Positions 10,811 through 64,000 of a stretch of DNA of 64,000 nucleotides are shown here, one piece after another (position 1 is the first letter of the stretch; each line of letters opens with the position of its first letter). The position numbers and the translations under genes were made by a program. The stretch covers positions 434,001-498,000 of the forward strand of contig CDRNST010000015.1 of the NCBI GenBank assembly GCA_977016875.1, written 5' to 3'. The stretch comes from Pavona decussata (taxonomy: Eukaryota). Below the pieces are notes generated by a model. It worked only from the letters and a program-made list of their open reading frames with translations. It ran no database searches and was not told where the DNA came from.

Positions 10811-10842
10811 ACAGGAGAAAAATCTAGTTTTCCAGTACTTAC

Positions 10843-10902
10843 CATTTGGTTAGTTCTCCGCTCCGTGGAGATTCCCGAGGGCTTGAAAAGGTGGCCATCA
10901 AT
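10843..10902 (-). CDS. Coding exon 3, copy A (IDGHLFKPSGISTERRTNQM)
   Basis: AG acceptor and GTAAGT donor, 60 nt. Confidence 0.6.
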
Positions 10903-11277
10903 CTGTTTAAAATAAAGTTTTTTACAATATAGCTGAGTTAGCACTGTTACAATCCTGTCACTCCTTTAGAGTCAAATTTTGAGGCAGTCAATGTTTGTGA
11001 GTTTTTTTGCCGGATCTTTACATAAAGTCATTAACGGGACCGTTGGCTGGAAGCTACTGAACACCTATTGCTGGTCTTTCTTATGGCCTAAACATTGGTA
11101 TTTCGAAATTAAAGAAAAAACAACAAACAAACAAAACAATTATAGTTTTACCTCTGCTTTCACGCAAACATTTTTAGGGCGAAATATTTTTTGTCCTGGG
11201 TCACAAGACTTTCTTCCTGTTCCGTTGGTTTTATTTCATTGTGAACAGTTAACAAGAAATTTCTCATGCTCCTTTAC

Positions 11278-11689
11278 CTGTAAAGGGACATGAGTCACAA
11301 TCGAAGTTGCTTCATTCCCACGGTTCACGGGCGTCATAATTACACAGGGACGCTGGTTTTCCTCATCAAAGACTGCCAAGTTAGAATAAAAGGCTTGAAG
11401 ATGACACGTGGCAAACACAGGGGCACCTGGCAGGGCAACTGTAGTTATTAGGATCAGCGCTACTGATTGAAGCGTGAATAGACTGCTGTGGATCCTGTTG
11501 GTATCCCCGTGGACGGTAACCACCACTGTAATTATATAACGGTTGGTAGACCGCCGGTGCTGCGCTGTTTTTGATGCCTTGCATCTGGAAGCTTGTTGTT
11601 TGCATCTGGTTACTTAAGTGGTACAGAGGCAATTTGGCTTTACAAGTCACATGAGTTACTGGACTGTCTTCATCTTCAGAGACGATTTC
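11278..11689 (-). CDS. Coding exon 2, copy A (frameshifted)
   Basis: Acceptor TTCCTGTGTAG, donor CAG|GTAAAG. Split between ORFs 11381..11650 and 11236..11526 in the track. Confidence 0.6.
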
Positions 11690-12200
11690 CTACACAGGAA
11701 ACGATAAATTAGGTGGTACCAGATCGATTGATTGATTGATTGTTTGATTGATTAGTCAAGACTCTTCTCACTCACTCTTAATACAGTTCAATTATAACAG
11801 AATTGTAATTAAATTATAATCAGACAGTTCAAGCCAGCTAATTTTATTCCTGGATTAAATCGTCCACACTCAAAGTTTTCTTGCCTTGAATTCACATTCT
11901 TGTAACATTTGTGCAATTAGAAGTTTTCGCGAAAAGTTACGATAATATCAATGGATAAAGTTATATTGCCTTCCACTAAAAGGTTGACAGCAGTTTTTCC
12001 ACAAAAAGAAAACCACAGTTTTTAATTCTGTCGGCAATATTTTTCTTATCTTTTTGCGTTTTTTTTCTTTGTTAAGCTGTTGAAATTTCCATTTAACTGT
12101 ATTTTTTAAAACAGCTGTCAGAAGGCTGTCATAACATGTCTTACCGAATTATATAACTTGTTGTATGGAGAAGAAGAACGCCTTAGGAGTGTTACTAAAA

Positions 12201-12499
12201 NNNNNNNNNNNNNNNNNNNNNNNNNNNNNNNNNNNNNNNNNNNNNNNNNNNNNNNNNNNNNNNNNNNNNNNNNNNNNNNNNNNNNNNNNNNNNNNNNNNN
12301 NNNNNNNNNNNNNNNNNNNNNNNNNNNNNNNNNNNNNNNNNNNNNNNNNNNNNNNNNNNNNNNNNNNNNNNNNNNNNNNNNNNNNNNNNNNNNNNNNNNN
12401 NNNNNNNNNNNNNNNNNNNNNNNNNNNNNNNNNNNNNNNNNNNNNNNNNNNNNNNNNNNNNNNNNNNNNNNNNNNNNNNNNNNNNNNNNNNNNNNNNNN
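12201..12499. other. Assembly gap over a (CAAT/CCAA)n microsatellite
   Basis: Run of N. The paralogous position in copy B (54745..54945) is the microsatellite. Confidence 0.9.
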
Positions 12500-12850
12500 T
12501 TAATCAACCAACCAATCAATCAATCAAATACGGGAATAATTTTCATGCTCCATAAAATACTGAAGCCCGGTGACACATCCTTTAGATAGATGTGGATTGG
12601 AAAGCATGGAGAGGAGATAGTGCCCAAGAGCAGTAACACCCTAACGTAACGGTAATGAAACGTTGTTCACTGTAGGGAAAACATTTAAGCTAAAATATCT
12701 ACAATGAAATGGTAGCTAAAAAGTTGGAGAAATAGCCACGCATTGGCGGACTCCACTGTCATCTCAGGACCTTAAGTTTAAGTTGTTCCTTGGTCCTTGT
12801 TCCTGGTGATTTCATTGAGCTTTACATAAACACTTGGATAAGATTCTCAC

Positions 12851-13213
12851 CTCTATCTCTACAGGGTACATTGACCTGAAAATGCGCTCCTGGATCCTAG
12901 TACCAACTTCTGTCATCGGTGGCAGTTGAACAAAGCGCCTATCAATCTGGTTCTCGCTGAATTCTTCATAGAAATCGTCAGGTAAAGATCCGCAGACATT
13001 GGTTATTTTTATACAACCCAAAGGGTCTGTATAGGGGTTTGGACCCTGTGGCAATGGAGCGGTGTGATGATAGGTCGCTTGGGAGAATGACTCTCCCTTT
13101 TCCTGTTTCACAGGCGTCCCACTTGTAATCATTAATGCGTAGTGCTGGTTATTTTCAGTGGTGTCTACATCCATCTTCCAGTCACAATCAAATAATTCTT
13201 TAAAAGAGAACAT
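12851..13213 (-). CDS. Coding exon 1, copy A
   Basis: ATG 13213, donor GTGAG at 12850, acceptor at 13269. 3 substitutions versus copy B. Confidence 0.7.
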
Positions 13214-42700: not shown

Positions 42701-45136
42701 TTTTAACCTAAATTCTTTTGAGCTGTCTCGGCAAAGGTATGCAAGCTTTTGCCTATATTTCCATCGTAAAAAACAGGTAAAATCCATTATTTTTAACCAG
42801 ACATCTGTAGTGTATCTGATGTATAATAGTGTTCAGAGCCTTGTTTAACTAATTCAGTGTTATGTGGGACGAGACATTTACACATAAATCGCATATTTTA
42901 TTTTCAATATGAAGTTGAGAATAAAGAAACGGAACGCTACTAAAGAAAAGTAGTTTTCAGTTGCTGTTTGAAAACCAAATCAAAGAAGCTTTTTATATTG
43001 GCCATCAAGTAACGTTCAGTGACAAACATCTTTCCTTGACAATTTAGATACAAAATTGGCTGCAAATAAATAATTAATTATGCGGGTTAATTATAACTCT
43101 GGACAATAGGCCATTTTGATGCTGTTTTCCTTTTTAAATTCAAATTTTTCGATCCCAGTTGTGAGCAAATATCAATAGCTTTGAAGGGTTTCTGATAGTT
43201 GGAGTAAAATGGAGTAAAGTGTTGGACAAGGTCTTAAAAAGCAACATGAAAATCTGGGCGATTCTGCAACAGTTTGTCCTAATGGAAAGAATACTAATAA
43301 TCGAAATCAATCATTTAAAATTTTTTTCCTATAGAGACCATCAAAATAATTTTCCCTATTGCAAAATGTCACCTTGAACATTCATGAGTCTTTATTTACT
43401 AGTTACCATCACAAGGCGTGTATGATTTGCAAACTTGTGGCGGTAAATACAATTTGATGTATGTTAACATTAGAAAAAGAGACATTAACTAACATTTTGG
43501 CACAATATTTTTCACATACTCTAATTGTATTTGTCAGTACAAGTCTGTAAGCGATAATTAATTAATTAATTAATTAATCAATTCATTAACTAAAGAAAAT
43601 GAGAAAATAAAAGACAAGAAATTGAAACATCGGCTTTGTGTGAGTGTAACTTTTATCGTCTCTTTTCCTTGGTAAATGTACAATATTGATATATTAACTA
43701 GCCTAAGTAATAAACACAATAATATAAATTTGACCTTAAAAATTAAAAAAAAAAACGCCGCATCCGTATTTTGAGTGCCCGTATTTTTTCTAAGTATTTT
43801 GGCGGGAAAATTCATCGTTTTCCACGGCGATGTTAACAGCACGGAAAATTTAAAAAAAGGGCGCATGCGTATTTTAGACGCCCGTATTTTTTCTAAGTTT
43901 TTGGTGGGAAAATTGTGAAAATTTAAACAGCCCATTACGACTAAAATCAAAATATTTAGCGGTTTTTTCTTTTTGGACAAAACGTCTACTAAATTTTCAC
44001 AATGTGTTTAGAGGATCAAAAAATCAAATAATGATCAACTGTCAGGGGTTTCGACGTGTAAAACTCCCTTGGAAACCTAAAAAGTGTCTAAGGGGACGTT
44101 TTTGGACACACTGATTCGATTGGAAGCTTATAAAAGAATATTTGTATTTCGCCTATGGTTTTTGGCCAAACATGACCAAATTTTGAAGTCCTCATTTTTC
44201 ACTTGTGTATGTCCCTAGGGATCTCTGCATGTCGTAAAACTCCCTTGGAAACCTAAAAAGTGTCTCAGGGGACGTTTTCGGACACACTTATTTGATTGGA
44301 AGTTTTGAAAAAATATTTTTATTTCGTCCAGGAATTGACTTTCTTCCAAGTGGTAAGGGCATGGTTTTTGGCCAAAACTGACCAAATTTTGAAGTCAGCA
44401 TTTTTCACTTTTTTATGTCTCTAGAGATCTCGGCGTGTCGTAAAACTCCCTTGGGGATTATTTTAAAGTGTAAGTAACGCCCTGACCAGGAACTTTCTGC
44501 TTAACCCTTACCCTGACTCCATCTCTTGTGGGCTATTTCTCTGTCCCTGGTCCCTTGGGAGGCCTTAAAAGTGTCTCAGGGGACATTTTCGGACACACTG
44601 ATCCGACTGTAAGCTTTTAAAAGAATACTTGTATTTCGTCCAAAAATCGACTTTCTTGCAAGGGGTAAGGGCATGGTTTTTGGCAAAAAAATGACCAAAG
44701 TTAAAGTCGGCATTTTTCACTTGTTTATGTCCCTAGGGATTTCGGCGTCATAAAACTTTGATTGATATTTACACATAATTAATCATATGTAAATATCTAT
44801 CAGCATTGCGGAGCAGCAATGATTCAAGATAATCTGGGAATTCAGTAAAGAATACATTTGTAGTGACAGGATGGCTCTCAGAGTCACGGGGTGGTCTGTA
44901 GTTAATTGCGATGCGAATGCTATACCAGCCAGATTTAATAATCCATTCTGAGAATTCATACGAATATCGCACAATTACACCAGCGTCAATCATTTTTACA
45001 TTCAGCGACTCGTGATCGATGATTCCAGTCCCCCCTTTACGGTGATCTGATCTCGTGCGATCTAAGATTTTGTAACCATTGGGGCAAAGCTCAGCTCCTA
45101 CTGAAGAGTCTAGATCGGTTAGCCAGTGTTCCGTAA

Positions 45137-45880
45137 AGGCTGGTTTCTTTATGATCGCGGATAGCAGATCGCAGATCGCAATAAGGTCTGCGATCGTCTG
45201 CGATCATATGGAAACATACTCCTGCGATCCTGCGATCACGATCACAGACGATTGCACTCGATTGCAGAAGATAGAACCATGTGCTATCTCCTGCGATCGT
45301 CTGCGATCATCTGCGATCATTTGCGATTTTGCGATCATATGGAAAGCAAAGTTTTGCGATCCGCGATCGAAACGCATCCCATAATATTTCGAGTTCTTCC
45401 CACGATTCAACGCTCGTGTGTGCGGTCTACGTTATAAATGTGTTTATTATCGCAGTCGCAGAGATTTTAACGGCAAGAACAAAAAGGCCAGCTATTGGGA
45501 CAAAATCGGGCAGAAGATTCATTTATCGGCCGAGGAAGCGAAGGCCAAATTTCTCCAACATAAGAACTGCATACGGTCGTTATCGAATCCAAAACCGATG
45601 TTTCCGACCGTTTTAGAGCTGGCGACGACTAACTTAATCATGACAAACAAAAGAAGTAAATTTGCTTGCAGCAAAATTTCCGCTCTTCCACGTTCGCGAT
45701 GTTGTTTGCTTTTCAGCCTACACGCGCGTGTATATTTGATCTTTTCGCTGACCAAAATGTATGCCTACGGTCGGCTCTGCGATCGTTGCGATTATATGGA
45801 AACAGCCTTTTTTTGCGATCGTCTGCGATTGTTTGCGATCTGCGATCTGCGATCGTCTGCGATCATATGGAAACCAGCCT
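45137..45880 (+). mobile_element. Same Harbinger/MADF element in copy B
   Basis: TAA TSDs at 45134-36 and 45881-83, same TIRs. Confidence 0.9.
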
Positions 45881-47901
45881 TAAGATTAATAATGGCAGGT
45901 GTATGATCGCAAATATATTTTGCCAGGAGCCTCTGTTCCATTGGAGTTGTTAGATTCTCTCTATTGTGTTCATTTTAACAATAGTTATGGAGTTGGATCT
46001 AATAAATCATTGTGCCTGTTGAATTTGGACGCTGGAATTAAGGTTTTTCTCTCACATTCTCTCGTGTGGATATGCAAAACAAAGATTCGCACTTCTTTCA
46101 TTAACCAAGGTCAAGTCAACAAAGGAGCTTTGTACGCAAGTCTTTTATTAACGCCGTTAAAGTATCCATTTATTAACTATTTAAAAGCTGTAACATTGTA
46201 GTATTATAAGAATTGTAATGCAAAGCGCATTTGATCATATAGCCATGTATTTTGCGCTATATAAATAACAAAGTTATGTTTTGTTTATGTTTAATACGTA
46301 AAAATGACAGTTTTCAAAATTTGGTGGAAGTGCCGAATATTCATCAATCATGCCAGTGAGCGCGTAAAAAACGCTTGAAACGATGATCTTAACTCGTCTC
46401 CTCAAGGACTTACCACCAATTTGAAATATATGGTTGAAACTGACTTCTCGGGTAAAATTGAAGTTTAAATATGTAAATATCTATCAGTATTGCAGAGAAT
46501 ATTTTTGTATTTGTACTCTAAAGTTTAATGTTTTCTACTCAGCCAGGAGAATTTCCTGGAGTTGTCCCCAATGCTTCAGTTTACAGCTGTAGTTTAGTAA
46601 AGTTAGACGGAGGGGCTTTTAAAAACAAGTACAGGGTTATGAAATGTCATTTTCGCATTCAAAGTATTTAAAAATTATATAGTTTCGTCGAAACCGAACT
46701 GGACTTTTGCTTCTATTTTCCATATAATTATAAGGTAGTAGCCCCACGCAAATTTGCGTATATCCGCGCGGGTTTATGACGTGAAGGGTGGCGCATATTT
46801 TTTTTTCTAAAAATAGATTTTTTGGTACAAGACATGGGGACGCGTGGACCCCATGCTTACGGTCTCCATCCCTGATTATGGCTCCTGGTAGTACTCACCA
46901 CTAACAGTAAAACAACAACAACCTAGAAATGCGTGGCCATTGCAGTTATGTACTGTAAATGACTTAAACAGCTGCGAAAAGAAAGCCTTAACAACGTTAG
47001 CGATTGAACGAGATTCGAACCAATGACTCTGCGATACCTTAATTAACTGAGCTGTAGTACTGGCTGCGGGAATAGCAGCATTATGCGGGTGCATCATACG
47101 TGGAAATCCTCCATATTACGCCTAAAATACTGGGAGCTGCACATTTTCTGAATTTGTGATTGGCAAGATACCCATAGAAGTGAGGAGATGTCAGTGAAAC
47201 ATTTGAATTTCAATCATAGAGAACAGTATTGTTGGAATACTTGCAGTAACAACAGTTAGAAGTGAGTGTCTGCTTGCCGCTCTTGATAGTCTTAAGAGAC
47301 CCTCGCAGTTCTCATTGTTTACCATATTGATCGCGTAAAAAAAGAAAAAACAACATTAACAGCACTGGTTGGCATGTGATTAGTGTGGGAGTAACTACCT
47401 ACGCCATTGTGAAATTGCACTTGTTTGACTTTAATGTAATATATTAAACACGAGGTAGAGTGTTTCAAGCCATTTCCAAACACCGAGAATTTGGTTGAAA
47501 AAGAGGCGGTTGAGGGAGAGCGGAGGTCCTTGTATTACGACAGCCGTGGAAAACTTGAAGCTAGCATAGCGCAAAAGTGTTTGTACAAAAACCCAAATAT
47601 TCTACTGTGGACAGATTTCAAGTTCCCGTTGAATGGAGCCATTTTTAACAAAAATGTTTATAACTGATAGTTAAAACGTTTCTCTGGTTGTAAAATTCAT
47701 TAATTATTCATCAAAGTTATGACCAATCAATACGGTAGAATTTAAGTCACATGTACACCTCTGTAAACCCCAATACAAATCAATGAATTATTAGACGGTA
47801 GAATTAGCTTTTGGTACAAGCCCCTGCTCAACTAATTAGTATTCATTAACTTTCGTTACAGATCTCTACTGATTAAAATTCTAAACACAATACATTCAAT
47901 T

Positions 47902-47945
<44 letters not shown>

Positions 47946-47954
47946 GATATCTGT

Positions 47955-47991
<37 letters not shown>

Positions 47992-49677
47992 ATACTTAAA
48001 AATATGTAAACGTATAAAAAATCAAATGCTTACAAAAAAAATAAAAAGAAAGAAAGAAAACGACCCCGTTTAGCTGTTCCAGGCGAGGTCTGTGATTGGA
48101 AAACGAAACAATAGGTAATAGGATATGAAACAATAAACCCTCGTCTGAGAACAATAGCAGCTACAGGATGTAGGGACCAGTAAAAATAGAAGTCTGAAAG
48201 AGCTACGGGACGACCGAAAAAACACAACTTTTCGGCCAAAACTTCAGCCTTCATCAGAGGAAAGCGATAAGAATTTACAAAGTCTTGTCTCAAATGGAAT
48301 GGATATGCACGTGCTTGTCAACAAGGCAAACATGCGGAGAGCAGCGAACATTTTGTACCCACCCAGAAAGCGGCTTCGTGGGGAAATACATGGCTGAAGG
48401 CTACAGAGATGCTCTATAGTACATCAACAATAGCCAGCTGAATTATAGAATTTTTGGCTTCACACTAATTACTGTGCACTGTTCACAGTGCCCTTTTTTC
48501 TTTGGTGGGACTTTTGAGACTTGTACGCTTCGATCGAACTCCCACCATCTTCGTTGTAACGGCGAGTATCAATGGCTTCTGATGCTCTCCATAGGATGAT
48601 CGAAGGCCCCTGGCAACAACCATAAGAATTTCAATGCCGTGCTTGTTGTCCCCACTAACGACACCAAGTACACGAAAGATTCCGTAGGACCACACTTCTG
48701 CATGATATGGGCTGCAGCGTTGAAACAACGGTTCCTAATAAACCGCCCAAATAAAATTCATGATGTTGTTGCGCGGGGCGGGTCAGTTGTTCCTCGGTAA
48801 ACGACCTGGTGTGTCAGGAATTCCTGCAGCCAGTTTCCGGTCTGCGAGGATTGGACGGAAATTACTAGTTATATCAACTTCATAGTGAAAGGTTAGGAAG
48901 CTCTTTATTCTTCCACTTGTTATGGTCAGCAATGGCAACCGTGGTCTTTTCCAGTATACAAATAGATATTAGAGCCTAATTGAACCTTTCCTTAATTTTT
49001 CGTCATTGCCGTGCAAAGTAGCTAAGAGTAGAAATCAAAACAAAAACAAAATAAATCATTCATGGACAGTACAATATTCTGCGTTATCTTCCATCTGAAC
49101 AAATATTTCTGTATGAAAAACTACAACTGCTAACAATTAAGGGATTCATGATCCGATATTCACGCCATGTTAAAATGCGCGTTACAAGTATTAAGTATTT
49201 ATTTTTTATTTATTTTATTCATAATCGTGCTATCACTATTTTCTTAACTTTGTCTATATTGCCATATTCTCTTATCATAAAATACTGTGCTCTAGTAAAG
49301 CGTACATCAGTCAATTGAGTAAAACTGATCGTCATACTGTATTGCGCTAAAACAAACTGATTGCGGTCAGACAATATGTTATCTGTCTCCGTTATCCTAA
49401 ATGGGCTGACTTCTCGGCTATGATTATTGGTATATTTTTCTCCTTAAAAATCAAAAGGAATGATTTTCTTCCTTTAAGGCCTTAAAGGACAATACAGTCA
49501 AAAATAGAACGTTGTGGCTTAACTAAATCTCTCTCTCTCTTTTTTTTTTTTTTACCAACAAAATTTTTGCACTAAATAACAAATTGGGAAAAAAGAATCA
49601 ACGTACTAAAAGTTTGTGATTACGGTTCAGTCAGGCAACAAATCGCTTGCTCCTTCCTAATAATCAGTGACGTCACT

Positions 49678-50076
49678 TCATGCCTGAACTTTGTGGCAAA
49701 TATTTCCGATGTACTTGACATCCACGTATTTTCCTCTCTCTTCATGAATGACAAATGCAATTTTCAGTCCACATTCGGGACGCTTGCATTCACCAGCCCC
49801 TCTGAAAAACGGTGCAGAGTGCCTCTTACGGGAATTGGCCGATCTCACGTGGTTGTTCTTGAAGCGCAAATCGCACCATGGGTTGCTATTCTTCACTTTG
49901 ATGGAGAAGATTCGGGTCCAGTCCCCACCTAGCAATCGCCCACCGCTAGGAAACGTACTGAGGGGAATCCTATCCCAGTCCTCCTTAGCGAGCTTGAATC
50001 GGGTTAGCTTCCCATTCATGGCCCGTCGGAAATATTCTTCTTCCTCAGAATCGTCAGAGTCTGGATCATCTTGGTT
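49678..50076 (-). CDS. Terminal coding exon, copy B (acidic linker + Cx4C...H domain)
   Basis: Acceptor TTCTTTGCTATAG, open to TGA at 49678. Only 6 substitutions versus copy A in 399 nt (3 synonymous, 2 R/K, 1 E/Q). Confidence 0.8.
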   Translation of the reverse strand, partial: NQDDPDSDDSEEEEYFRRAMNGKLTRFKLAKEDWDRIPLSTFPSGGRLLGGDWTRIFSIKVKNSNPWCDLRFKNNHVRSANSRKRHSAPFFRGAGECKRPECGLKIAFVIHEERGKYVDVKYIGNICHKVQA

Positions 50077-53000
50077 CTATAGCAAAGAACACAAATTGAT
50101 AACTATCAAGTAATGAGTAGTTTTCAATTGATTGTCGTAAAACCAAAGCCAAAACAATTACTCTGACACCTACTACGCAAATAACCAATCAGAATTCGAA
50201 GCAAGCACATGTAACTGGCGGCAAGAGCGGGAGCAAATCGTAAACCTTTTTCACTGTCATTACAACCACTCACTGCCTTTACTGAATTAAGGTATGGGAG
50301 GCGAGATTTTGCGAAGATAGAAGGTCGTAAGACAGGGAAACGAAAAGTAGGACACGTCGCCGAAGGGGAGGTGGGTGGGTGAAGAAACATTCTGAAATCC
50401 CAGAACGGCGTAACTTGGCGATAAGGACCAAAGAGCAGGAATATTTTGCTTAAATAGGCAGATGAAGTCCCACGAGACATGGGTGGCATTGACTTTAAAA
50501 CACCGAGGCGTTACAAACATACCAGCGTTGCACGCAGGCTGCTTTCGTGGTTATTTAGGCTATGTTCACAAGGGACCGTCCCAAATGGATCCGACCCTAT
50601 CCTGGAACAGAACACTTCTGTTGACAAGGCACCGTTCCGTTTATTAACGTCAGGCCACACGGGACCGGTCCGTTATGGTTCTTTACTCAATCGAAGTAAG
50701 AAAAGCAGCTGTTTCTACCAGTTAAGCATCCGCAGAATACACGTTGGCGCCAAATAAGGCTAATTCGATAGAGGAAGGAGATAAAGCCTTCAGATAGACG
50801 GACGATGAATTATCCCTTCTCTTAAAAGTTATTACAGATTACAAAGCCTGTGAGGTTTCAAACGGAAAAGATTGGGAAACTGTTCAAAGAAAATATGAAG
50901 ACATCATTGAAAGGTTTCTCGAAAGATATCCTTCCAAGATTTCCGATGGAATATTGTATTAACAGCCATTTGGACGACGGTCAGTTGCCTTAAGGCAGTT
51001 AAACCAAGAAGTATGCCGACCAAAACAACGGCTTTTTGCCTCCTCATGCATGTACTTCTAGACCGAAGCACGATAAATTCAACTAGTACCCAAGCTTAAC
51101 TGTGCTGCTAGTACCAAAAGGAACTGGTCCAGGTGTTTACACGGTGGCAGATCCATTTGGGACCGAAACGGTTCCAAAACTGGACCTGCTTTTCTGGAGG
51201 TCCAGTTACCGGACCTGATCGGGAACGAATTGACAGTACGGTGAGCAGGTCCCGTGTAAACAAAAGGCCTATCCGTCACAATTTTTAGACCAAAACCATT
51301 TGGAACTGGTCCCGTGTGAACATAGACTTAGACAGTGAGTCAGAATAGGGATTGGTTTTGGTCCAATCGCCTCTCATGGCTTTACAAAGAGGTGCGACTT
51401 TGAATTGAACTTCTAATTTCATTGGACCTGTATATCACGCAGCTCTATTGTTTCACAGTTAGTGAGGGACCATTGTCTTTGTCGTTTGTTGATTGCTCCG
51501 CTTTTGTTTTTGTCAGCCAGTCCTGTGAGCTGCTCTAAGGGCTGCGTATTGCTCTGCTGAGCCAATCACAGAGCGAAGTAAAGTAAAACCAAAGCAAACG
51601 GAAACTACTTTCGACACCCAAATGAAAGCTGGTTAAGAAAAAAAAATGGTTACAAAATATGGTAAATGAAGCCAATACCTACAAAAATTTAAGAGTTACA
51701 TCATGAGAACGCTACATCACTTTGGGAGACAAGTAGCTTAAATGTCGAAAATCTTATCTTAATTATTTAGTGGATGCTGTAATTCCGGAGTTTTGATTGG
51801 CTTAGCGGCGATGGTATATCAGCTGCAATACCATTCGCGAGAAATAACAGCTGAGATATTTTGATGGAAAATATTTTCAAAAAATAGTTTTGATTACATT
51901 TCAGGGGCGCAAAGAAAGGTTTTGGCGATTGCTTACGACAGTGTTGTCTCTAAAAGAAAGACTGGATTAAGGTCTGGCTGCCAGTCATCAAACAAATACA
52001 TGTCACGTTAATGCAATATGTTGTGTTGAGTTGTGAGCGTTTGAATAGACCAATTTCGATATATTAAAATTCAGCCTGAAACAATAAAAATCACTGCGAG
52101 GCTTCAGGGAATAAACCCATATAAACTCTACAATTTATTCCCCGGAGCCCCGCAGCGATGTTATTGTTTCAGGCTGAATTTTAATATATCAAAATTGGGC
52201 TATTTGTTTAGCATCTTATTTCAAAGTTCTTCGTATTATTATATAAACAATTAAAGTTTTACAGTACATAACCAGAGAGAAGATAAAGAAAAAAATGCAT
52301 ACGACAGTACTTAATCCGGCATGAGAAAAATTTCCATTTCGCTCAAGGACAGATGAGAAAAAAAGACTACCAACAATTCCAGCTTATAGTCTTATGGAAG
52401 TGGAAGGGGAGAGGGGAAAAAAGAAGGAGTGGGGGGCATGATCGTGAAGGTTCTAGCATGGGCTATAGGAAAAATGGGTTTCGACTACATAAAAAACTCA
52501 AATAAAGTTTCATTACTCGATTTTAGTAGTTTCTCCATGTATATTTCTGGTAGAAAAGCTTGAAAAACGCTCCACTTGTTTCAAAGCTATGCAGCCAGTA
52601 TTCGTTTAGGCTTAGTAACAAAGCGTCCCATGCGTAGGCGATAAGTGCACGAAAGTTAACTCATATTCCCCCCTGGGTAGGAACCAAACTCGATCGGTCG
52701 CAAGAAGCTCGTAAGAAGTTACAGTGCCCATCTCCATATAAGGAAGCAAATGGTGCCAGTGCCCCCGGGGGTCTGAAAAGGCGCTGCAAGTCACAGGTAA
52801 CGAAGAGGTGTGGGAGAGATTTTGGTCAAGATGGTCAAGAGCTGCTACGAAGTAAGTGGATAGTTGGAAGATGTTTTCATCGTACTATTTCATTTTTTTG
52901 TTTTGAATCCCGTGCCATGGGGCGACAAACTAACTTCCTTTCAGGTTTTGAAATAAATAGCGTCCTTTAAAATCCATTTACTCCGGTTCAGTGCTTGAAA

Positions 53001-54836
53001 GCTGTTTCTAGTGTTCGATTTGTATTCAGCATTGGTTTGAATAACGATTGTTGCGATTTAACCGCTTAATTGAACATCATCCGACATTGAAGCCATCCGA
53101 AGGGGCCGGAGTTGGCGCTCTCTCGAGCTGAGAAGAAACTGAGATTCAACAAGTAATGTTTGGGAAAGTCCTAAATAAAATGTTATGTATGCAAACTTTT
53201 GCTTTGTTTGTGTGCTTCGTTTGAAAACGCATACTTTTCCATGCGGTTTCACCTGTTGTCCACACTAAAACGCGCGAAAACGCCCATGAAAGCGGAGACT
53301 TTTGAAAACGCTTCGTTTCTATAGCGTGGATGGATGAAAACAGAGAAGAGAAAGAGAAAGAGAAAGAGAAAAGAGAAAAATCTAAATTTCCAGTACTTAC
53401 CATCTGGTTAGTTCTCCGCTCAGTGGAGATTTCCGAGGGCTTGAAAAGGTGGCCACCAATCTGTTTAAAATAACGTTTTTTACAATATAGCTGAGTTAGC
53501 ACTGTTACAATCCTGTCACCCCTTTTAGAGTCAAATTTTGATTTTTTTGTTGGATCTTCACATAAAGTCGTTAACGGTACCGTTGGCTGGAAGCTACTGA
53601 AGAGCTATTGCTGGTCTTTCTTAACATTGGTATTTAGAAATTAAAAAACAACAAAGAAACAAAAGCAATCATAGTTTTACCTCTGCTTTTACGCAAACAT
53701 GTTTAGGGTGAAACATTTTTTGTCCTGGGTCACAAGACTTCCTTCCTGTTCCTTTGGTTTTATTTCATTGTGAACAGTTAACAAGAAATTTCTTAGGCTC
53801 CTTTACCTGTAAAGGGACATGAGTCACAATCGAGGTTGCTTCATTCCCACGGTTCACGGGCGCCATAATTACACAAGGACGCTGGTTTTCCTCATCAAAG
53901 ACTGCTAAGTCAGAAGAAACGTTTAAAGATGACACGTGGCAAACACAGGGGCACCTGGCAGGGCAACTGTAGTTATTACCATCAGCGTTACTGATTAGAG
54001 CGTGAATCAACTGCTGTGGACCCTGTTGGTATCCCCGTGGACGGTAACCACCACTGTTATTATATAACGGTTGATAGACCGCCGGTGCTGCACTGTTTTC
54101 GATTCCTTGCATCTGGAAGCTTGTTGTTTGCATCTGGTTACTTAAGTGGTACAGAGGCAATTTGGCTTTACAAGTCACATGACTTACTGGACCGTCTTCA
54201 TCTTCAGACACGATTTCCTAAACAGGAAACGATAAATTAGGTGGTACCAGATTGATTAATTGATTGATTGATTGATTGATTGATTGTTTGATTGATTAGT
54301 CAAGACTCTTCTCTCTCACTCTTAATACAGTTGAATTATGAAAACTGAATTGTGATTAAATTATAATCATACAGTTCAAGCCAGCTAATTTTATTCCTGG
54401 ATTAAATCGTCCACACTCAAAGTTTTCTTGCCTTAAATTCACATTCTTGTAACATTTGTGCAATTAGAGGTTTTCGCGAAAAATTACGATAACTTTAATA
54501 GATAAAGTTATATTGCTTTCCACTAAAAGGTTGACAGCAGTTTTTCCATAAAAAGAAAACCACAGTTTTAATTCTGTCGGAAATATTTCTCTTATCTTTT
54601 TGCGTTTTTTTTCTTTGTTAAGCTGTTGAAATTTCCACTTAACTGTACTTTTAAAACACCTGTCAGAAGGCTGTCATAACATGTCTTACCGAATTATATA
54701 ACTTGTTGTATGGAGAAGAAGAACGCCTTAGGAGTATTACTAAAAAAGCCAATCGATCAGTAATTACTCAATCAATCAATCAATCAATCAATTAATCAAT
54801 CAAGTAAGCAATCAACCAATCAACCAACCAACCATG

Positions 54837-54871
<35 letters not shown>

Positions 54872-54956
54872 CCCACCAACCAACCAATCAATCGATCAAT
54901 CAATCAATCAATCAATAAACCAACCAACCAGTCAACCAATAAATTAATCAACCAAC

Positions 54957-54987
<31 letters not shown>

Positions 54988-55675
54988 ATACGGGAATAAT
55001 TTTCATGCTCCATAAAATACTGAAGCCCGGTGACTCATCCTTTATTAGATAGATGTGGATTGGAAAGCATGGAGAGGAGATAGTGCCCAAGAGCAGTAAC
55101 ACCCTAACGTAACGGTAATGATACGTTGTTCACTGTAGGGAAACATTTAAGCTAAAATATCTACAATGAAATGGTAGCTAAAAAGTTGGAGAAATAGCCA
55201 CACATTGGCGGACTCCACTGTCATCTCAGGACCTTAAGTTTAAGTTGTTCCTTGGTCCTTGTTCCTGGTGATTTCATTGAGCTATACATAAGCACTTGGA
55301 TAAGATTCTCACCTCTATCTCTACAGGGTACATTGACCTGAAAATGCGCTCCTGGATCATAGTACCAACTTCTGTCATCGGTGGCAGTTGAACAAAGCGC
55401 CTATCAATCTGGTTCTCGCTGAATTCTTCATAGAAATCGTCAGGTAAAGATCCGCAGACATTGGTTATTTTTATACAACCCAAAGGGTCTGTATAGGGGT
55501 TTGGACCCTGCGGCAATGGAGCGGTGTGATGATAGGTCGCTTGGGAGAATGACTCTCCTTTTTCCTGTTTCACAGGCGTCCCACTTGTAATCATTAATGC
55601 GTAGTGCTGGTTATTTTCAGTGGTGTCTACATCCATCTTCCAGTCACAATCAAATAATTCTTTAAAAGAGAACAT
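49678..55675 (-). CDS. Spliced gene (intact copy B), ~410 aa; low-complexity N-terminus plus C-terminal Cys/His domain resembling MULE/FB-NOF transposase DNA-binding (WRKY/GCM-like) domains
   Basis: Exons 55675-55313, 54217-53807, 53460-53401 and 50076-49678 (363+411+60+399 nt). All junctions have GT/AG sites, are phase 0, and join into one open frame. Extra exons cannot be excluded. The domain assignment is from remembered motif similarity, not a search. Confidence 0.75.
50558..51327 (+). mobile_element. Same Harbinger/Myb element in copy B, lacking the nested MITE
   Basis: Same TIRs, TTA TSDs, empty CTG site at 51215-17. Confidence 0.85.
53401..53460 (-). CDS. Coding exon 3, copy B (IGGHLFKPSEISTERRTNQM)
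   Basis: Acceptor TTTTAAACAG, donor ATG|GTAAGT, 60 nt, phase 0-0. Confidence 0.7.
53807..54217 (-). CDS. Coding exon 2, copy B (EIVSEDED...THVPLQ)
   Basis: Acceptor TTCCTGTTTAG, donor CAG|GTAAAG, 411 nt open frame, phase 0-0. Confidence 0.75.
54250..54298 (+). repeat. (ATTG)n microsatellite (shorter in copy A, 11725..11753)
   Basis: Directly visible. Confidence 0.9.
54749..54988 (+). repeat. Compound tetranucleotide microsatellite (CAAT)n/(CCAA)n
   Basis: Directly visible. Confidence 0.95.
55313..55675 (-). CDS. Coding exon 1, copy B (MFSFKELFDC...YPVEIE)
   Basis: ATG at 55675, donor GAG|GTGAG at 55313, upstream acceptor TTTCTTTTACAG (so a 5'UTR intron exists). Confidence 0.75.
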
Positions 55676-58600
55676 CTCAAATTCTTGTGCCTTTTAACAC
55701 CAACGTTAAAGCGTTGAAAAATAGAGAAGTCTGTAAAAGAAAATTAAAAAACAATCAATCAATAACATGTCATCATTTTTGTCCCCAGTACCGCGACCCT
55801 TTTGGCCAGCGCCCATTCTCGTGCCCAGAGTCCTCTGGCTCTTTGGCTTACGGTTGCTCGCCAGGAGAGACTCTGGAGAATTAAAAAAAAGAAATACATT
55901 TTACTTTTTCATCGTGAATTTTAAACGGAAAAACTCTGAAGAAGCACTGGCGTTACTTTCAAACTAGGCAAAGTTTGTGAACTTTGATGTTTTGCTTCAA
56001 CATGTTTTACAGTTTTCGTCTTGTTCAACCAATGAAATTGTTTAAAGCATTCTAACAAGGATTGTGATTGGCTTATTTTAGCGTGATTTATGAGGGAGAT
56101 GAGAGTACAGATGCACGCTGACGCCACTACTGTTCGTTTGGAAAAGAAAGTTTGTTTTGAAAATGAGCGTGAATGCGTGGAGAAATAAAATGATTCTTTA
56201 TCATAAAACAAATGAAGAAGCCTCGACTGTCCTTTGTGCTGTTGTAAAGCACTTAGGAAGCGGCTGGAGCACTCAAGAAGTAGGGAGAAACACTCGACTA
56301 CGTACGTCTCGTGTTTCAACGTACACTTCTTTCGTGCTCAAGACGCTTCCTGCGTGCTTTTTACAATAGAACAAAACACGGTCGAGGCTTCTTTATTTGT
56401 TAAATCGATCGTTTTCACGGAAAGGTCAAGTTCCTACTAATTTAACTCAGACAATACCCAGTGCACGTTCTCATCACATGAGCTTCAGCTGCCTGTGCTT
56501 CGACGCCCACTCATAGACGATCAAAGGTCCGCTTTTTGTGCATGAGTGGTCATGCCTTTTGTTTTTGCTATCTGGTTTGTTGAATAGGGATCAAATCCAC
56601 CATAAGTAATACAACAAGTACATACTGTGCTGACCTAAAGAATTCCCTATCCGAAGCGGATTTTGCTCTGTCACTGGCCGGTAGTCCTCATATGAGTACC
56701 GGAACATGCACATATTCCAGCGGTTCATTTATATCCTCATTGTAGTTCTCTTTTTTTTGTCAACGATCGCTGCTCAGTTTTAAAAATTTGGATTCTTGCT
56801 ATTTGACCTACCTACTTACCTAATTATCACCTTTCTAGCATTTATTTATTGGTTTTCATAAAATTTAAGTTAATTTGGATGGTTTTCTCCAGTTTTAAAG
56901 AAATCGAGGCTTCCAAGATAGTAAGATAGTAAGCTGATCCAAGATGGTGGCTTTTCAAAATAAATGTTATATGTCACTAGGTGATATGTTTTCAGCAATG
57001 GTTCAATGGCAAGGATCCATTATTGATTTCCTGTTTTGTCTCGTGATTCGAGGCAGATTCTTGCCAACAAGGCTTTGTCTCACGGAAACTTTAAAGACAT
57101 CGGGTCATGGCTGTGAATTTCTGGCACTGACATTATCAGAAAAAACGATCAGTTGTGTGCGTCGGCTTGTCATGTAAAACTCTCATGTGTCAACTCTACT
57201 GAAATTAACCCCTTAAGCTTCAGTATCAACATCCAAATTCTCCTAATTGTTCCACATATATTCCCTTTGGTACCAGTTGGGAGAATTTGCTTAAATACCC
57301 ATGCATTTCATGTTTGTTGATCATGCCTTTCATTCTCACTAAATACATGTTTGATCAAGTAGTGATGTCTAAGGGAGAAACCTGATGCTGATCACTATTG
57401 GGGCCCTGCCCAAAGAACGCAAAGAACGATGAGCAGTCGTTGGACCACGACAAAAAGCATGTTCTTGCTTCTGCATGGAATGATCGTCATACGGTTCCTT
57501 AAAGTCATATATACGACAAATATAAGGACGTGGCATGGCATATTCAGAAGGGCAAGAAAGTGTACGGATCTTATAGACTTGTAACAGGAATTTCGTATTC
57601 CGGATAACTGAAGGGAGAACTTTAACACCCAGCGTCCACACACATAAGTATATCTCGCCGTAAGCTTGATGCCGGTTTGACCAGCTAACCACGATAGCGC
57701 AATTAGAAAGCGCAAATTAACTGATTTTCAGTTGCCGGGCAACTGAATCAGTCACCTTGGCTCTATCGAACATTAACTGAAGTTACATGTTTACTTTGGA
57801 AGCTTACTTGCCAGCGAAATGGCAACTGAAGTCGGCTGTTGCCTCGACCTAGCCAGTACTACATGGCCTAAAGTCATTTGGAGCATTTGCTGTTAGTCGA
57901 TACGAAAAATTTGGCTGCCTTGAAGATATCGCGTGGAAAGAATCGTGCAACTTCCAAAGTTGTGGTTGACATCAGTTTATTCAATGCACGTGGCTTGGCT
58001 TGCTACTGCTAACAGAACACGAAAGTTGGAACAGCGAAAGCAACAAAAATGCAACTTGGAAAAGCTTAGCAGAGAAGCTACAGTCACCGCATGTCATCAT
58101 TTTGTTGTAAAGCAAGCAAATATACGTTTTCTTCTCTCCTCACTTGTAGACAATCAGTACTTGTTAATTGTTGAATGTTAACATTCAAATGTATGTAGCC
58201 ATAGTAGTTTTAAATGGGTGAAATTTATTTGTTTCATCTCAGTTTTTAATTCATACTACATGGTTTTTGGATTACACTTTCACAAAATGCTGCAGATTTA
58301 TTTACTCAAATGATGGCATTCGAAAAACAAAGCCTTGTGGCCGAAATTAGAAATGTGACTGAGTAATTTATGACTGATCACCGCTTGACACCGAAATGAC
58401 CTCACAAAAGAGACAGTACCGAATTATTCAGCTTCAAACTATTGCCTGTACTGTCACAACTTTTCTTTCAAAATAGAAGAGCTTACTAGGATTTACTAAG
58501 TGTTTCGAGCTTCACGGGAAGAGATCTACCTCGCAGAGCAACAGCGCAAGAGGAAAATAAAACAAAAATGATATAAAAAGATAAAGATGAAGTAAATATA

Positions 58601-61600
58601 TAATTTAAAAAAAATATTGAGTTAATGATCATTTTGGAAATTGCAGCTTCCTCTCTTAAAATACTAAAAGACCTTGTATGAGGGTTTCAAAATTATCAAC
58701 CAGTATTTTTTTTTATCTTTTTGTTACTCCACTTTCTTTGAAACTATACCATGACTAACACAGATTTCCAGACCGATTCAGTGAAGGCCGTGAACTCAGA
58801 ATTTAGACCCTGTTCGAAGTTGTCAGTTCTCGCTCACGTTATATTTAAAGGCAAGAAATTGTGTAGAAATAAATAGAGCCCAGAAGATATTTGTTTTAAA
58901 GCGTCCGGCTTGGAATGAAGTTTGCTGCATAAATTGTTGGATAGTCGCAGAACAACAAATAGTAATCGGTGAATATGCTTATATTGAATGTCCAGAAAGG
59001 CACGCTAATGAGACTCATGAACTGTATGATAGACATCACAAGGTGGCCCCTAACCTTAATTCTTATTAAAACACAAATAATTCTGTCAAACATGAAGTAA
59101 TGTGAAAACGACAAAAAGGTCTGTTTTTTTATGAAGTACCCAAATTCAGGGTAAGGTGTATTTCTGGACATAAGTGTATATTGGAGATATATTGACATAC
59201 TTAAAAGAAAAATAATTTTAACCACATCGAGATCAAGTTTTGTGGAAGTTGTAAATGAAGGTAGCCCAGAAATAATTGAATATGCGGGTTGTTGAAGAAT
59301 TGTTCCATTTGCTGGCCATTGACTAGGTGAGGTGATTGGCATGTTTATACTGCTAAGGATTTTGTTATAATTTAGTCCGAAAAACAGGTCGCAAATTTGA
59401 CAGACAATTTGACAAATTTGACAGGGCGCAAATTAGATCAAATTCTTCTGACAAAGACCGGAACACAAACACAGCTTGCATGCTTCTTTGATACACAGTC
59501 GTGAACGAGAGTTTAAGTGGGTTATTTACAGAGCTCTGAAAGAAAAACCGAGACGAAATGCTGAAGGAAATGTTTTTGTAACACAGTTATTCTCTTTTCC
59601 TTTACATCTTTTCACGTCGTATGGTGATCCGAATCATGATTTTCTGTAATTCCCTAACCTTGAATTATTTATACTATTGCGTTTGTGCCTTCACTGAAGC
59701 ACTGATGCCATTAAATGCGTTTAACAATGATAGGTATGTGCCAAAAAAAAAAGCAACATGTTTTGATATGTGTAGAGTTCAAACTTGCGCGATATTTCCA
59801 ATAAAGGCTTCCCCCGGAACTTTACTAAGACGTTGAAATGAAAATCGCATATTAGGTTTACAAATGGATGGAAATTAGAGAAGTTTTTTTGGTATTTATT
59901 TCTAGAATATGATTTGCTGTTTGATTATCGAATTTTAAGTTTGATTCTACAGCCAGTACAAGGCCGAGCCGGAGGTCTATATAAAAAGGGGAAATAAACC
60001 TGGGGGGTGGTATTATTGCACAGCTTTTTTCGCGACCGATTATAGCTACAGAAGAATTCTCAGTCGTCTTTTGTGAATAAACTTCAGCAACTATGTTCAC
60101 AATACGCGATTTATGGAAGAAGAGGACGATTCGAGATAAGTTTGCGGTGGTGAAAACATTTCATTAGCTAGTACTGTTACAAGAAATTAAATGCCATGAA
60201 TTGGATGTAGAAGTGCAGATAGATTTATTAATAGAGAGCTTGCTTCAGTTGTAGTATCGACTGTTGCTCGCTTTCTGACTCTGTTAAACTTTATCATTCG
60301 TTTTGTGGCTTCATAAATTCTTCCCAGTTGACTTTTATTTAAATGACTGTGACTTTACCAACGCTTTACAAAATAGTGTTTGGGTCATAGTAGCACAAGG
60401 ACATTAATTATATGCTTTTTTATTATCAGTGTTTATTATTTGGGAGTAAAAGCATAGACCACCGAATTTTTCGGTAATATTCAGTTGTACAAGTACTAGC
60501 GTTCAGTGACTATTGGAGTCAGGTGACTCCTACAAATGTTTTGGGATATTTTTTTAAGAAGCTGGTACTAAAGTGTATAGCATGAATACTTGTGCGATTT
60601 TTGCATCGACTTATATATTGTATTGTGATGCCATAATTAGGACACCGAGACCTGCTTCTGCGCTGGTGTGTTGCACGTTTGATAGAAACATTTCATCTCA
60701 GCCTACAACTGCTAACTTTTATTCGCTTTATAGTAATTTTCATTTGAAGAATTTGTAGTAATCAGTGGTGTTTACCCTTCTGACCGCGTTGCAAATGTCA
60801 AATCAGTCAAATGATTGTGAGCTGCAGTAACTACTAAAAGAATCACAATCAACAAGTTTCCTCTGTACTCAATCGAAAACTTAACATGGTCTATTGGCTA
60901 AAACTTCCCTGCTTTCTTTATACAGCATGTAAACAAAGTCATGATTTTATGAATAACTGTAGAAACATTAACATTGTTAGCATAGCAGAGTGTAATCTAT
61001 AATCGAATCCCTTGAATCACTGCAGTATCACAGCAGAAATGTTTCCAAGTGCTGTAACTTAATTTGTTGCTGGCTGGAAGCCCAAAAGAAACATTGATCT
61101 AGCCGACGCCGTAAAATGAAGTTTAGTTCGAAACAGTTGGCCCAGCACTCAACATAACAAATCGATAGTGTAGGTGAGCAGTTCTATTTCCGGAATGCCG
61201 GAGGACAGTTTTTGGACAACATGGCGTATGTCATGCTGGAAATAGGGAGTTGTAATTAGGACTACTTAAGAGTTGTTTTTAAACTAATTGGACTCAGTTG
61301 CCATTAAAATATTAAAACTTTGTTGGCCCGCTATGCTACATTTTAAGCTGACAGATTTTATGTAAAGCAATCGAATAGCTAAAGTGTAAGGTTTACTTGC
61401 TCTTTGCAGAGTTTAGAATGAAATGACTTTAATAGATGAAATTTAAAATGATCAGAATTAAAGAACACTGGATTTGACTGCTCATAAAATATTGCTGTTA
61501 TTTTCAAAGTCAGACGACTTTAGCTGTCGTAACCAACACCACCAGAGCAATGATATAGTCGGCAAAATGCGGAGCGTTGATTCTTGTTATATCATATATT

Positions 61601-64000
61601 GAATTGGGCCAATTTATGGCCTGGAATCCACTACCACGGTGAAAGGGATCCCTCGATCCGTATAATGTGGGATATATCTATGCGAAGAATTTGAACCTTG
61701 CCGCACACCTTGCCGCAAAAATTATTTTAAAAACGGACACCTTTTTAAAAATGTTTCCAGAGTAGAAGCGAGGCTTTTCTCTCAAACGGTTCCCAGAGGG
61801 ATTTACGCGTTTTCATATTCAGTGTTGTCTCTGTACGGGCTCCATGTAACACAAATTAAGGCGCGAGGAAAACAGGTAGTTTATGCCCCATTGTCTTGTT
61901 CAGTGGTGTTTAGATAGAAAGTGAGATGGGTGGAAACTTTCATATTAAGAAGTATTACTAAGTACTGCGTGAAGAGCCTGCCGTGACATGACAACATATA
62001 ATCAGGATGAGTCGCTTGCGAAAGCGCGTTGTTATCTACACTGACCTCCTGAAGGAGGAAAACATATTACAAAAAAATAGTTTTTATTAGGACTGTTTGT
62101 TGGGTATATGATTTGTCGCTTGCGTGGCTCAAAGTTCATGTCAATTGATGTTGGAAAAGGAAGATTCTTTTGTCTCAAAACGGCAAACTTTCTTCTCAGG
62201 ATCATCTGGCTCTAAAAGGATGATATAATTACGACTCTTCTTAGGTTATAATCTTCATGATCGGGTGGAAATTCCCTTGTATTTATTTTTTCGTACTTTC
62301 AATCTCTCGTTTCTCCTTTGTTTATCAGAGTAGCTAAATTGAACTGATTCAGGGGCAAGCGCGGACGGAGAATGTACTTCAATCGTTGATTTCAAGTCGA
62401 AGATGTGAAGAACCAACTAGAATTCCATTCAGTGAAGCTCTCCGTGAGTTTTTTTTTTTCCATGATTTAGGATATAGTTAGCTTCATTGACGAATTCCTT
62501 ATTAGTTCATTATTTTTCCTTTGAAGATCGATCTGCGGAATGATGCCGTGATATAACAAATGGTATGTAAGATTACAATGTTTTGCATTCATTTGATTGC
62601 CCATTAAGTGTTGACCTAATAAAATCTGACTTCGAAAGGATTTAAACATCAATTGAAGTAGCTTAATGCTATTTAAACTTCCTTGCATTTTGGTTCCATT
62701 AAATCTATTATTGTTTCACGATTGACTATTTCCTTTTGATATTTCCGTTGCAATTATGAAATAAAATGAAATGAAATGAAACAAAACAAATTCATTTAAT
62801 GTAATTCTGAAGCTGCGATGTCGCCTCCATTCCGCATGATGGAAACTTGGATGGATTATAGGTTAGTGAGCCTTTTGGTCTCCATATCCTTTGTGTAGAT
62901 ACAACCCGACGGCAGAAAATACGTCACTTGTCCCATCCCCATGTGTGCAATCCGACGGACAAAGTTCAATTTTACAAAAGACGACAGATTTCTCAACTCA
63001 ATAAGCACTTACTTTCTTATTACAGGGAGGAAGACTAAAATGGTGGATGTTGTAAATACAGCAAGATGTCCGGCGTCGAAACCTAACCTACGCAAAGGTA
63101 AGCAGATATTTCTAAAACAAAGAGCAATATACGCTCTCGCAGCCCCATGAAAATTGCAAGACTTTCATTGATGGTTATAACCATCTTGTAATTTTGACGA
63201 GAGTGCCGTTTGACTTTTGTACCTTACTCTGTATACAGACAACAGGTAATTTTCCGACAGCACCAGGTTGTATAAACCAAACCAGACTTTAGTAAATCTT
63301 TGATCGACTTTTTGTATGATCGCGAATTATGCGCAATGTGTTTAATGCCGAAGAACCTGTTCTTGTTAACCATCGGAAAGAGAGACGATTTTTATTTTTA
63401 TTCAAGATGATTGGTGTGGCTGAATTATAATTTCTCAAATAGTTCAAACAACCTGATTTATCATCTGGTTTACGCAGCATGTGAGCTAACTCTCTTGTAT
63501 GTGAATAAATTTTTTTTGGGAAAGGTATAATTGCACGGTCAAATAGCCTAACTGAATCCCGATGCTTACTGGGTTAATTGAACTCACCTTTCGTAGGGAA
63601 AGATTGTTTGGATAATTGATCTGCATTTTTCTAGCTCGCGTGATTACCCATTAAGTCAAAACTTTTTTCTGAGGTTAAATTAAGTTATTTTACTTGCCGC
63701 TTTTTTCAGTCCTTGATGTTTTTGGTTAAGTAGAGTATATTTTATTGTAGTTTAGGTGGCGGTGCACTATTAAAATTTAACAGCCCGAACTTAGGCATCG
63801 ACAAAATCAGTGCTGCTACGTAACTGAACCACATACAGCCACCTCTGTAGCGACGGACGGACGGACGAGAAGGAGGAAGGGTCGCTTTTTTTCAGATGTT
63901 TAGATAACTCAGAGGATGAACCAAAAAGCTATTTCCCGGTAGAGCAGTACTGCTGACTACGAAGATTCCATGGAAATAAATGCATGCTCACGGACTGAGG

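Follow-up and report, generated by a model that had tools for sequence, protein, structure and literature searches.

The 64-kb stretch of the Pavona decussata genome analysed here (G000:C15:434001-498000, referred to as the window) carries on its minus strand a gene whose last exon encodes a putative DNA-binding domain. Our preferred reading, to which we give a probability of about 0.72, is that this gene belongs to a small hexacorallian host gene family, which arose when the N-terminal DNA-binding domain, and nothing else, of a NOF-FB/Rehavkus-like Mutator transposase was domesticated, and that its product acts as a regulator. A first-pass annotation made from the letters alone had proposed a transposase-derived DNA-binding-domain gene at this place. 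The results described below support that proposal; its second part, the function as a transcription factor, is something we infer.

Four phase-0 exons with GT..AG at every junction could be read from the sequence, and the joined exons predict a product of 410 aa. An in-frame TAA is located 18 nt upstream of the ATG at 55675. The N-terminal 290 aa are acidic, with a net charge of -21 (14% D+E, 8% P, 7% Q and 14% S+T), and are followed by a basic terminal domain with a net charge of +13. The stop codon comes four residues beyond the conserved His (H-K-V-Q-A-stop). Thus the acidic, P/Q/S-rich region and the terminal motif (W...NPWC...Cx4C-x25-H) were present as the first-pass annotation had described them. 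Splicing was checked by aligning transcript contigs from four runs, the sources of which are labelled as a coral species and coral metagenomes, to positions 49678-55675. The joints 54216/55312 (cut +1), 53460/53807 and 50076/53401 were all carried by contigs, from the runs X1, X3 and X4 of three studies. A single 475-nt contig of X1 comprised E2, E3 and E4, and another contig of the same run contained E1 with 51 nt of 5' untranslated region before it and 62 nt of E2 after it. At the level of the gene cluster the locus is therefore a real spliced gene, and the four-exon model proposed earlier holds at that level.

Database searches were run exon by exon and structure prediction covered the terminal domain. 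A Pfam search with the three large exons gave no match at E up to 10. An alignment of 70 sequences (A2) served for the profile, for the analysis of conservation and for the AlphaFold model. Across these relatives one Trp, one Cys (in NPxC), Cx4C and one His are conserved, plus the pattern F-K-x-N-x-V...S-R-K...P-F-F; C85-x4-C90 is retained in at least 90% of the sequences. Strand 1, in which the fold has an aromatic residue (the W of WRKY) that packs against the ligands, shows the consensus C-x-F-x-F-K-x-N-x-V with a conserved Phe. The model of the last ~115 aa built with A2 reached a pLDDT of 94.5 and a pTM of 0.85, with strands at residues 58-65, 79-85, 93-98 and 105-117. According to this model the domain is a four-stranded antiparallel module of the WRKY-GCM1 type, as this fold was defined by Babu et al. 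2006 (PMC1702500), behind a conserved beta-hairpin/helix extension. A first AlphaFold model, derived from an alignment of 15 paralogs, had a pLDDT of 63 and was set aside, and a shallow profile of these 15 paralogs found no sequence match in the PDB.

The assignment to the WRKY-GCM1 fold, which the first-pass annotation had suspected, is made because the structural rankings of two aligners and a sequence-profile match agree, the scores of single PDB matches being modest. Among PDB sequences the A2 profile matched WRKY1 (2ayd, E 0.006) and WRKY4 (1wj2, E 0.027), followed by WRKY33 at a non-significant E of 0.75. In the HMMER alignments of WRKY1 and WRKY4, Cx4C and the His were in register with the ligands of both proteins. 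Foldseek ranked WRKY18, WRKY1 and RRS1-WRKY at the top of the PDB by probability, and a search independent of Foldseek placed Aft2 (4lmg, Z 5.7, 74 residues) and WRKY33 (Z 5.1) first among 48,161 chains. After re-alignment the seven best PDB matches were WRKY18 (two entries), WRKY1, Aft2, RRS1-WRKY, WRKY33 and WRKY11 (Z 5.1-6.9), all of them from the WRKY-GCM1 superfamily. WRKY18 was best, with a Z of 6.9 for 78 of 80 residues at 3.0 Å, and the top matches to WRKY, Aft2 and RRS1 covered 72-78 of 76-80 residues. The WRKY model of Pfam (PF03106) gave no match to the domain in the window at an E of 10 or below and matched one of the 70 relatives at E 0.045; WRKYGQK is absent. At an E of 1 or below the 70 members matched a total of 43 Pfam families, and FLYWCH (PF04500), GCM (PF03615) and FAR1 (PF03101) were not among the 25 listed as matched by most members; clusters of FLYWCH, FAR1, GCM and ZSWIM3_N were weak language-model neighbours (0.78-0.83).

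Structural comparison also pointed to the origin of the domain. Its best neighbour in the ESM Atlas was a cluster named "120.7 kDa protein in NOF-FB transposable element" (TM-score 0.81, 116 of 120 residues, 2.3 Å), in which Ulp1 and PHD domains are common; a WRKY cluster came second. When 1.84 billion representatives were searched with a profile, 235 relatives came up at E up to 1e-3. Of the 213 that were classified, 34 carry at least 300 aa after the domain, which in these proteins is usually near the N-terminus. The long relatives span 600-2100 aa, and their tails are homologous to one another over about 600 aa, with the consensus elements L-Y-x-D-A-T-G-S, I-x-x-D-x-S-x-A-L-I, H-I-C-x-x-H and T-N-x3-E-N-x-F-x2-L-K. 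Two Asp, Cys, His and Asn are invariant or nearly so in the tails, some of which have added PHD, Ulp1 or UCH domains. The catalytic region was not recognised in Pfam and PDB sequence searches of the long relatives. Language-model features of the tails were closest to NOF-FB (0.90) and to Mutator-like elements (MULEs; 0.86), and hhalign aligned the tails to canonical MULE open reading frames (ORFs) of this genome with a probability of 85.5% (E 5.7e-6), the D, D and CxxH residues being aligned. By this profile comparison the long relatives appear to be Mutator-superfamily-like transposases, which agrees with the MULE/FB-NOF derivation put forward in the first-pass annotation. In a tree of the domain, which is based on few columns and has many unresolved forks, nine scleractinian domains formed one clade (SH-aLRT 97). 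This clade grouped with Nematostella and a long-tailed protein of 610 aa (SH-aLRT 90), and was otherwise placed among transposase-borne domains.

Several individual relatives deserve mention. A metagenome contig (L019) encodes at 8001-10541 an intronless, transposase-like relative of 846 aa. Upstream of this ORF (L019:1-4881) are about 4.9 kb of minisatellite arrays of 37/134 bp, reminiscent of the Foldback/Rehavkus structure; within the contig no terminal inverted repeats (TIRs) were found around the ORF, only the minisatellite arrays. PHD finger and minisatellites are the stated hallmarks of Rehavkus, a MULE-like group in Repbase (PMC6446971). A word search with the protein P0026 yielded nothing beyond unnamed relatives, one protein from a sponge and one from an ant, the last annotated as Ulp1-like protease. 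Two further entries (P0063 and P0073) stand out. One, from Clytia hemisphaerica, carries the domain C-terminally and bears the annotation 'gametocyte surface protein P230-like, partial'; the other, a transposase-like relative of 1067 aa, is filed under a bacterial metagenome-assembled genome (Sedimenticola sp.) and is probably mis-binned eukaryotic DNA.

The closest relatives in the databases were coral ORFs and RefSeq entries of Montipora foliosa and M. capricornis named "uncharacterized protein". Next came the Nematostella protein XP_048582703 (385 aa, domain at 231-342, E 8.5e-21), which is likewise "uncharacterized" in RefSeq. In the Montipora proteins as well as in XP_048582703 the domain is at the C-terminus. 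In the Nematostella gene it belongs to the last exon and follows a region rich in Ser, Asp and Glu; the gene is present as tandem paralogs (LOC125556674 and LOC116606246; L040:10001-14711 and 21076-24711). The terminal exon of Nematostella contains about 30 more transposase-homologous residues after the domain than the coral genes. E4- and E2-like exons were also found on an 11.3-kb contig from a Tara coral metagenome. No DDE region was detected in either place: the full-length profile matched only the domain, both within 24.7 kb of the Nematostella locus and in the Tara contig. Judged by these sequence relationships, the locus is a member of a small unnamed family common to stony corals and a sea anemone. 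The homologs are thus not confined to high-copy, TIR-bounded elements; such a confinement would have spoken against the first-pass annotation.

In the genome of P. decussata (602 Mb searched, in 1180 contigs) the E4 protein query identified 18 loci with 65-100% identity, and every frame was open. Searching with the 70-sequence domain profile gave the same 18 loci and no further ones. Several of them are probably haplotig or segmental duplicates, given the identical pairs on C198 and on C35/C110. E1-like sequence occurs elsewhere in the genome as seven open full-length copies and four open copies in which the match falls into two parts. E1- and E2-like exons occur with most of the closer paralogs, and E2-like sequence is also found beside the distant members on C35/C110. 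Seven paralogs, the loci L012-L018, are 92-94% identical to Montipora proteins. The subfamily of the window gene itself is represented in the databases only by ORF fragments of 113-161 aa.

Part of this expansion is visible within the window, which contains a second copy of the gene (copy B; the gene described above is copy A). Both are embedded in a tandem segmental duplication that repeats every 42-43 kb and comprises three units or more; the third is on the same contig, 42 kb upstream and outside the window (G000:C15 about 398000). This arrangement indicates a recent lineage-specific expansion. The duplicated unit takes in the gene and its non-coding surroundings, and the non-coding DNA of the copies is 86-98% identical. 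The first-pass annotation had counted only six differences in the 399 nt of E4 between the two copies. The count was correct (three silent changes, Q>E and twice K>R), but it is weak evidence because the whole ~43-kb unit was duplicated recently, and we have dropped paralog similarity as a sign of selection for the same reason. Information comes only from comparing exons with introns, where E1 and E4 are the more strongly conserved.

Selection was assessed from pairwise ratios of nonsynonymous to synonymous substitution rates (dN/dS), calculated by NG86. For the domain core, dN/dS was 0.04-0.35 in most pairs: 0.1-0.2 in the deep comparisons between subfamilies (dS > 1), 0.04-0.15 within the Montipora-like subfamily L012-L018, and 0.11-0.35 for the window gene against L004, L005 and L007. 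In the N-terminal exons the median was about 0.48, with E2 at about 0.3-0.75. These values, the calculation of which had been suggested in the first-pass annotation, point to purifying selection on the domain and make the putative DNA-binding end the most constrained part of the protein.

The coordinates of the gene, its copy and the duplicated unit are compiled in Table 1.

Table 1. Exons, domain and tandem copies of the candidate domesticated gene, in positions of the 64-kb window
Feature	Position	Strand	Description
Exon 1 (E1)	55313..55675	-	ATG at 55675; 121 codons, acidic N-terminal region; donor GAG|GTGAGA; joint 55312/54217 in X1, X3 and X4
Exon 2 (E2)	53807..54217	-	137 codons, Q/P/S/N-rich, Cys cluster CPARCPCVC; joints on both sides
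Exon 3 (E3)	53401..53460	-	20-codon micro-exon; joints 53460/53807 and 50076/53401 in X1 and X4
Exon 4 (E4)	49678..50076	-	132 codons and stop; acidic D/E/S linker, then terminal domain
WRKY-GCM1-type zinc-binding domain core (predicted)	49693..50034	-	Exon 4 residues 15-128; conserved Trp, Cys (NPWC), Cx4C, His
Tandem paralog, copy B	6541..13213	-	E4 6541-6939, E3 10843-10902, E2 11278-11689, E1 12851-13213
Second unit of the ~43-kb tandem segmental duplication	43209..64000	.	Matches window 1-21000 at 86-99% identity
Identity of copy A and copy B, exons			E1 99.2%; E2 93.7%; E3 93.3%; E4 98.5% (6/399 nt)
Identity of copy A and copy B, other			Introns 86-94%; 1 kb downstream 93%; 1 kb upstream 97.6%

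Hallmarks of a mobile element were sought around the gene. A full-length profile of the transposase relatives, compared with all six frames of the window, matched only the domain and revealed no DDE region, and no flanking inverted repeats were found around the gene within 45000-60000. The inverted repeats that were found are intronic, namely GATT microsatellites in intron 1 and 44-nt arms at 52044-52204 in intron 3. In both respects the first-pass annotation was right. The gene is low in copy number (18 loci), its frames are intact and the hallmarks of an element have been lost, which fits a domesticated transposase-derived host gene. It might be objected that the locus is no host gene at all and represents a transcribed remnant or a captured fragment of a mobile element, be it a transposase gene in decay or a Pack-MULE-like chimera. 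After all, the domain is of transposase origin, the locus is duplicated, its introns contain high-copy repeats and one copy is frameshifted. A remnant, however, would not be expected to occur in only 18 copies with the domain exon open in all of them, to keep its exon-intron structure across paralogs, to show dN/dS well below 1 while lacking flanking TIRs and any DDE remnant, and to share its architecture with a gene of Nematostella. Moreover, the duplicated unit consists of 43 kb of ordinary DNA and is not element-sized. These facts largely refute the idea, which we consider very improbable.

Some repeats and neighbouring sequences should be described in their own right. The repeat at 52044-52204 in intron 3 has arms that are 95% complementary and a spacer of 73 nt, and has the appearance of a miniature inverted-repeat element or a hairpin. 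A larger inverted repeat at 30183-30577 of the window consists of 163-nt arms with 93% complementarity, 69 nt apart. Two stretches of intron 3 (50078-50277 and 51478-51877) showed a very high summed contig depth with many loose ends in all four runs, reaching ~34,650 in the coral metatranscriptome X7. They are high-copy repeats that are transcribed elsewhere in the genome, probably fragments of transposons. Finally, the duplicated unit contains at 45418-45903 on the plus strand an ORF of 162 aa with a borderline Pfam match to MADF (Myb/SANT-like; 21.9 bits, the cut-off being 22).

How might the protein work? Fold, charge (+13 in the domain, -21 in the N-terminal part) and homology suggest DNA binding and a role as a transcription factor. 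What was captured would be the N-terminal domain of a NOF-FB/Rehavkus-like transposase of the Mutator superfamily, the catalytic region not being kept. Three Cys and one His (C-x28-C-x4-C-x25-H) may hold one zinc ion. In the locus L018 (G000:C35:2858549-2858929) an Asn replaces the Cys directly before the conserved His, which makes a role of this Cys in zinc binding unlikely. DNA would be contacted by the first strands, with their conserved F-K-x-N-x-V...S-R-K, in the way described for the strands of WRKY and GCM (PMC1702500). Residues in the strands that match these contact strands are conserved from transposases to host proteins in A2. The acidic, P/Q/S-rich N-terminal 290 aa could then serve as an effector region, activation-like or partner-binding, and the whole protein would be a zinc-stabilised, sequence-specific DNA-binding regulator.

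A shared fold does not show function, and a WRKY-like module might have been re-used as an adaptor that binds protein or RNA and does not recognise double-stranded DNA. WRKY domains can act as protein-interaction decoys, an example being RRS1-WRKY, whose structures are among the matches, and the coral domain has neither WRKYGQK, the canonical contact motif, nor the HxH dyad. Its net charge of +13 argues the other way, as do the basic residues in the WRKY/GCM contact strands, which are conserved from transposases to host genes. In addition, the transposase homologs sit where the domain that binds the ends of the element is placed in MULEs (PMC1702500). An adaptor function thus appears distinctly unlikely.

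A different proposal leaves DNA binding in place and changes the target. Truncated transposase repressors block their elements, and a protein reduced to the DNA-binding domain might likewise sit on NOF-FB/Rehavkus-like elements, at their ends or in their subterminal repeats, and so block or tether these elements. The conservation of the domain with transposases, including the putative DNA-contact residues, is in keeping with such a control of transposons, and a lineage-specific tandem expansion in which some paralogs have dN/dS of 0.5-1.4 is compatible with an arms race. On the other hand, searches with a single tail and a 31-sequence profile found no cognate catalytic region in the genome and therefore no evident target, and the family has been kept under purifying selection since the split of stony corals and sea anemones. 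Transposon control as the function of the gene seems rather unlikely, though still a serious alternative.

Several observations weigh against the regulator reading or restrict it. The three diagnostic E4 bases of the 475-nt transcript contig (49970T, 50024T and 50044T) are those of L003, the third copy of the tandem, which is situated beyond the window, and disagree with copy A, so that splicing is shown for the gene cluster and not specifically for the copy in the window. E2 of copy B has an insertion of 1 nt near 11394 that breaks the frame and would lead to premature stops if the transcript were spliced as in copy A; the copy is either a young pseudogene or the insertion is an assembly indel, E1 and E4 being still intact. 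Pairs involving the loci L009-L011 gave dN/dS of 0.5-1.4 for the domain core, from which it appears that some members of the recent expansion are relaxed. Taken together with the frameshift in copy B, this may mean that part of the expansion is decaying. As to the fold, the Foldseek E-values of 0.13 or more are not significant by themselves, and structural Z values up to 6.9 are modest, as expected for a domain of ~70 residues, and a middling value may also come about by chance. Of the second dyad, which in the superfamily is H-x-H or H-x-C at the end of strand 4 and in WRKY is HxH, only H116 is conserved, aligned to the second WRKY His. The conserved upstream Cys (C56 of NPxC) may replace the missing ligand as the fourth one of the zinc ion. 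Lastly, the search of the whole genome for the catalytic region by the single tail query and the 31-sequence profile, in which nothing was found, used a loose first filter, so that its absence is not proven; the same tool located canonical MULE domains at 52 or more genomic places.

Despite these points a domesticated regulator gene remains our preferred explanation. A more far-reaching version of it supposes a regulator family present throughout the Hexacorallia that took its DNA-binding domain from a NOF-FB/Rehavkus-like Mutator transposase before stony corals and sea anemones split, has a C-C-C-H variant of the WRKY-GCM1 zinc site, expanded later in tandem in acroporid corals and provides these corals with lineage-specific factors for transcription or transposon control. 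To this wider scenario we would give even odds.

The domain family has neither a Pfam model nor a name, and a literature search found no paper describing this gene family. It is thus a further, apparently undescribed case in which a WRKY-GCM1 domain was domesticated from a Mutator-type transposase. If the family binds DNA, it would add a class of transposon-derived regulators dating from the early evolution of anthozoans. Nematostella, with its two tandem genes and good genetic tools, offers a system in which to study the family, which has also expanded recently in reef-building corals. Furthermore, the high-confidence model establishes a connection between the WRKY-GCM1 fold and the NOF-FB/Rehavkus-like transposases, which are poorly characterised.

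DNA-binding domains of transposases have repeatedly become host regulators, as in WRKY, GCM, FLYWCH, FAR1 and Aft. To our knowledge, cnidarian examples of such domestication are scarce. The nearest known systems are NOF of the Drosophila element FB-NOF and the Rehavkus/Phantom-like transposases, to which the coral protein is alike over the whole 120-aa module, as the superposition in the ESM Atlas showed. Full-length relatives are also alike by sequence, with hidden Markov model E-values down to 1e-12 and the same signature of W, C, Cx4C, H and F-K-x-N-x-V...S-R-K. However, they continue for ~600 aa with D..D..CxxH..E, often followed by PHD, Ulp1 or UCH, whereas in the coral protein the domain is C-terminal, behind an unrelated acidic region, and the reading frame ends four residues past the His. 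Plant WRKY proteins (AtWRKY18, 7z0r/7z0u; AtWRKY1, 2ayd) share the four/five-stranded sheet (Z 6.2-6.9, root-mean-square deviation 3.0-3.2 Å over 72-78 residues) as well as the Cx4C dyad and the terminal His in register. They differ from the coral domain in that identity is 22% or less, and the latter has no WRKYGQK, one His in place of HxH and an extra N-terminal hairpin/helix. The fungal iron regulators Aft1/Aft2 (4lmg, Z 5.7), which we take to be members of the WRKY-GCM1 superfamily, present a like fold in a host transcription factor, but Aft2 is only 11% identical, belongs to another lineage and carries the domain at another position. FLYWCH (Mod(mdg4), FLYWCH1), GCM and FAR1/FHY3 possess WRKY-GCM1 transcription-factor domains that are shared with or derived from MULE transposases (PMC1702500). 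The coral family would represent the same kind of event, although no Pfam match to FLYWCH, GCM or FAR1 was obtained here. While FAR1/FHY3 retain the whole body of the transposase, the coral gene retains the DNA-binding domain only.

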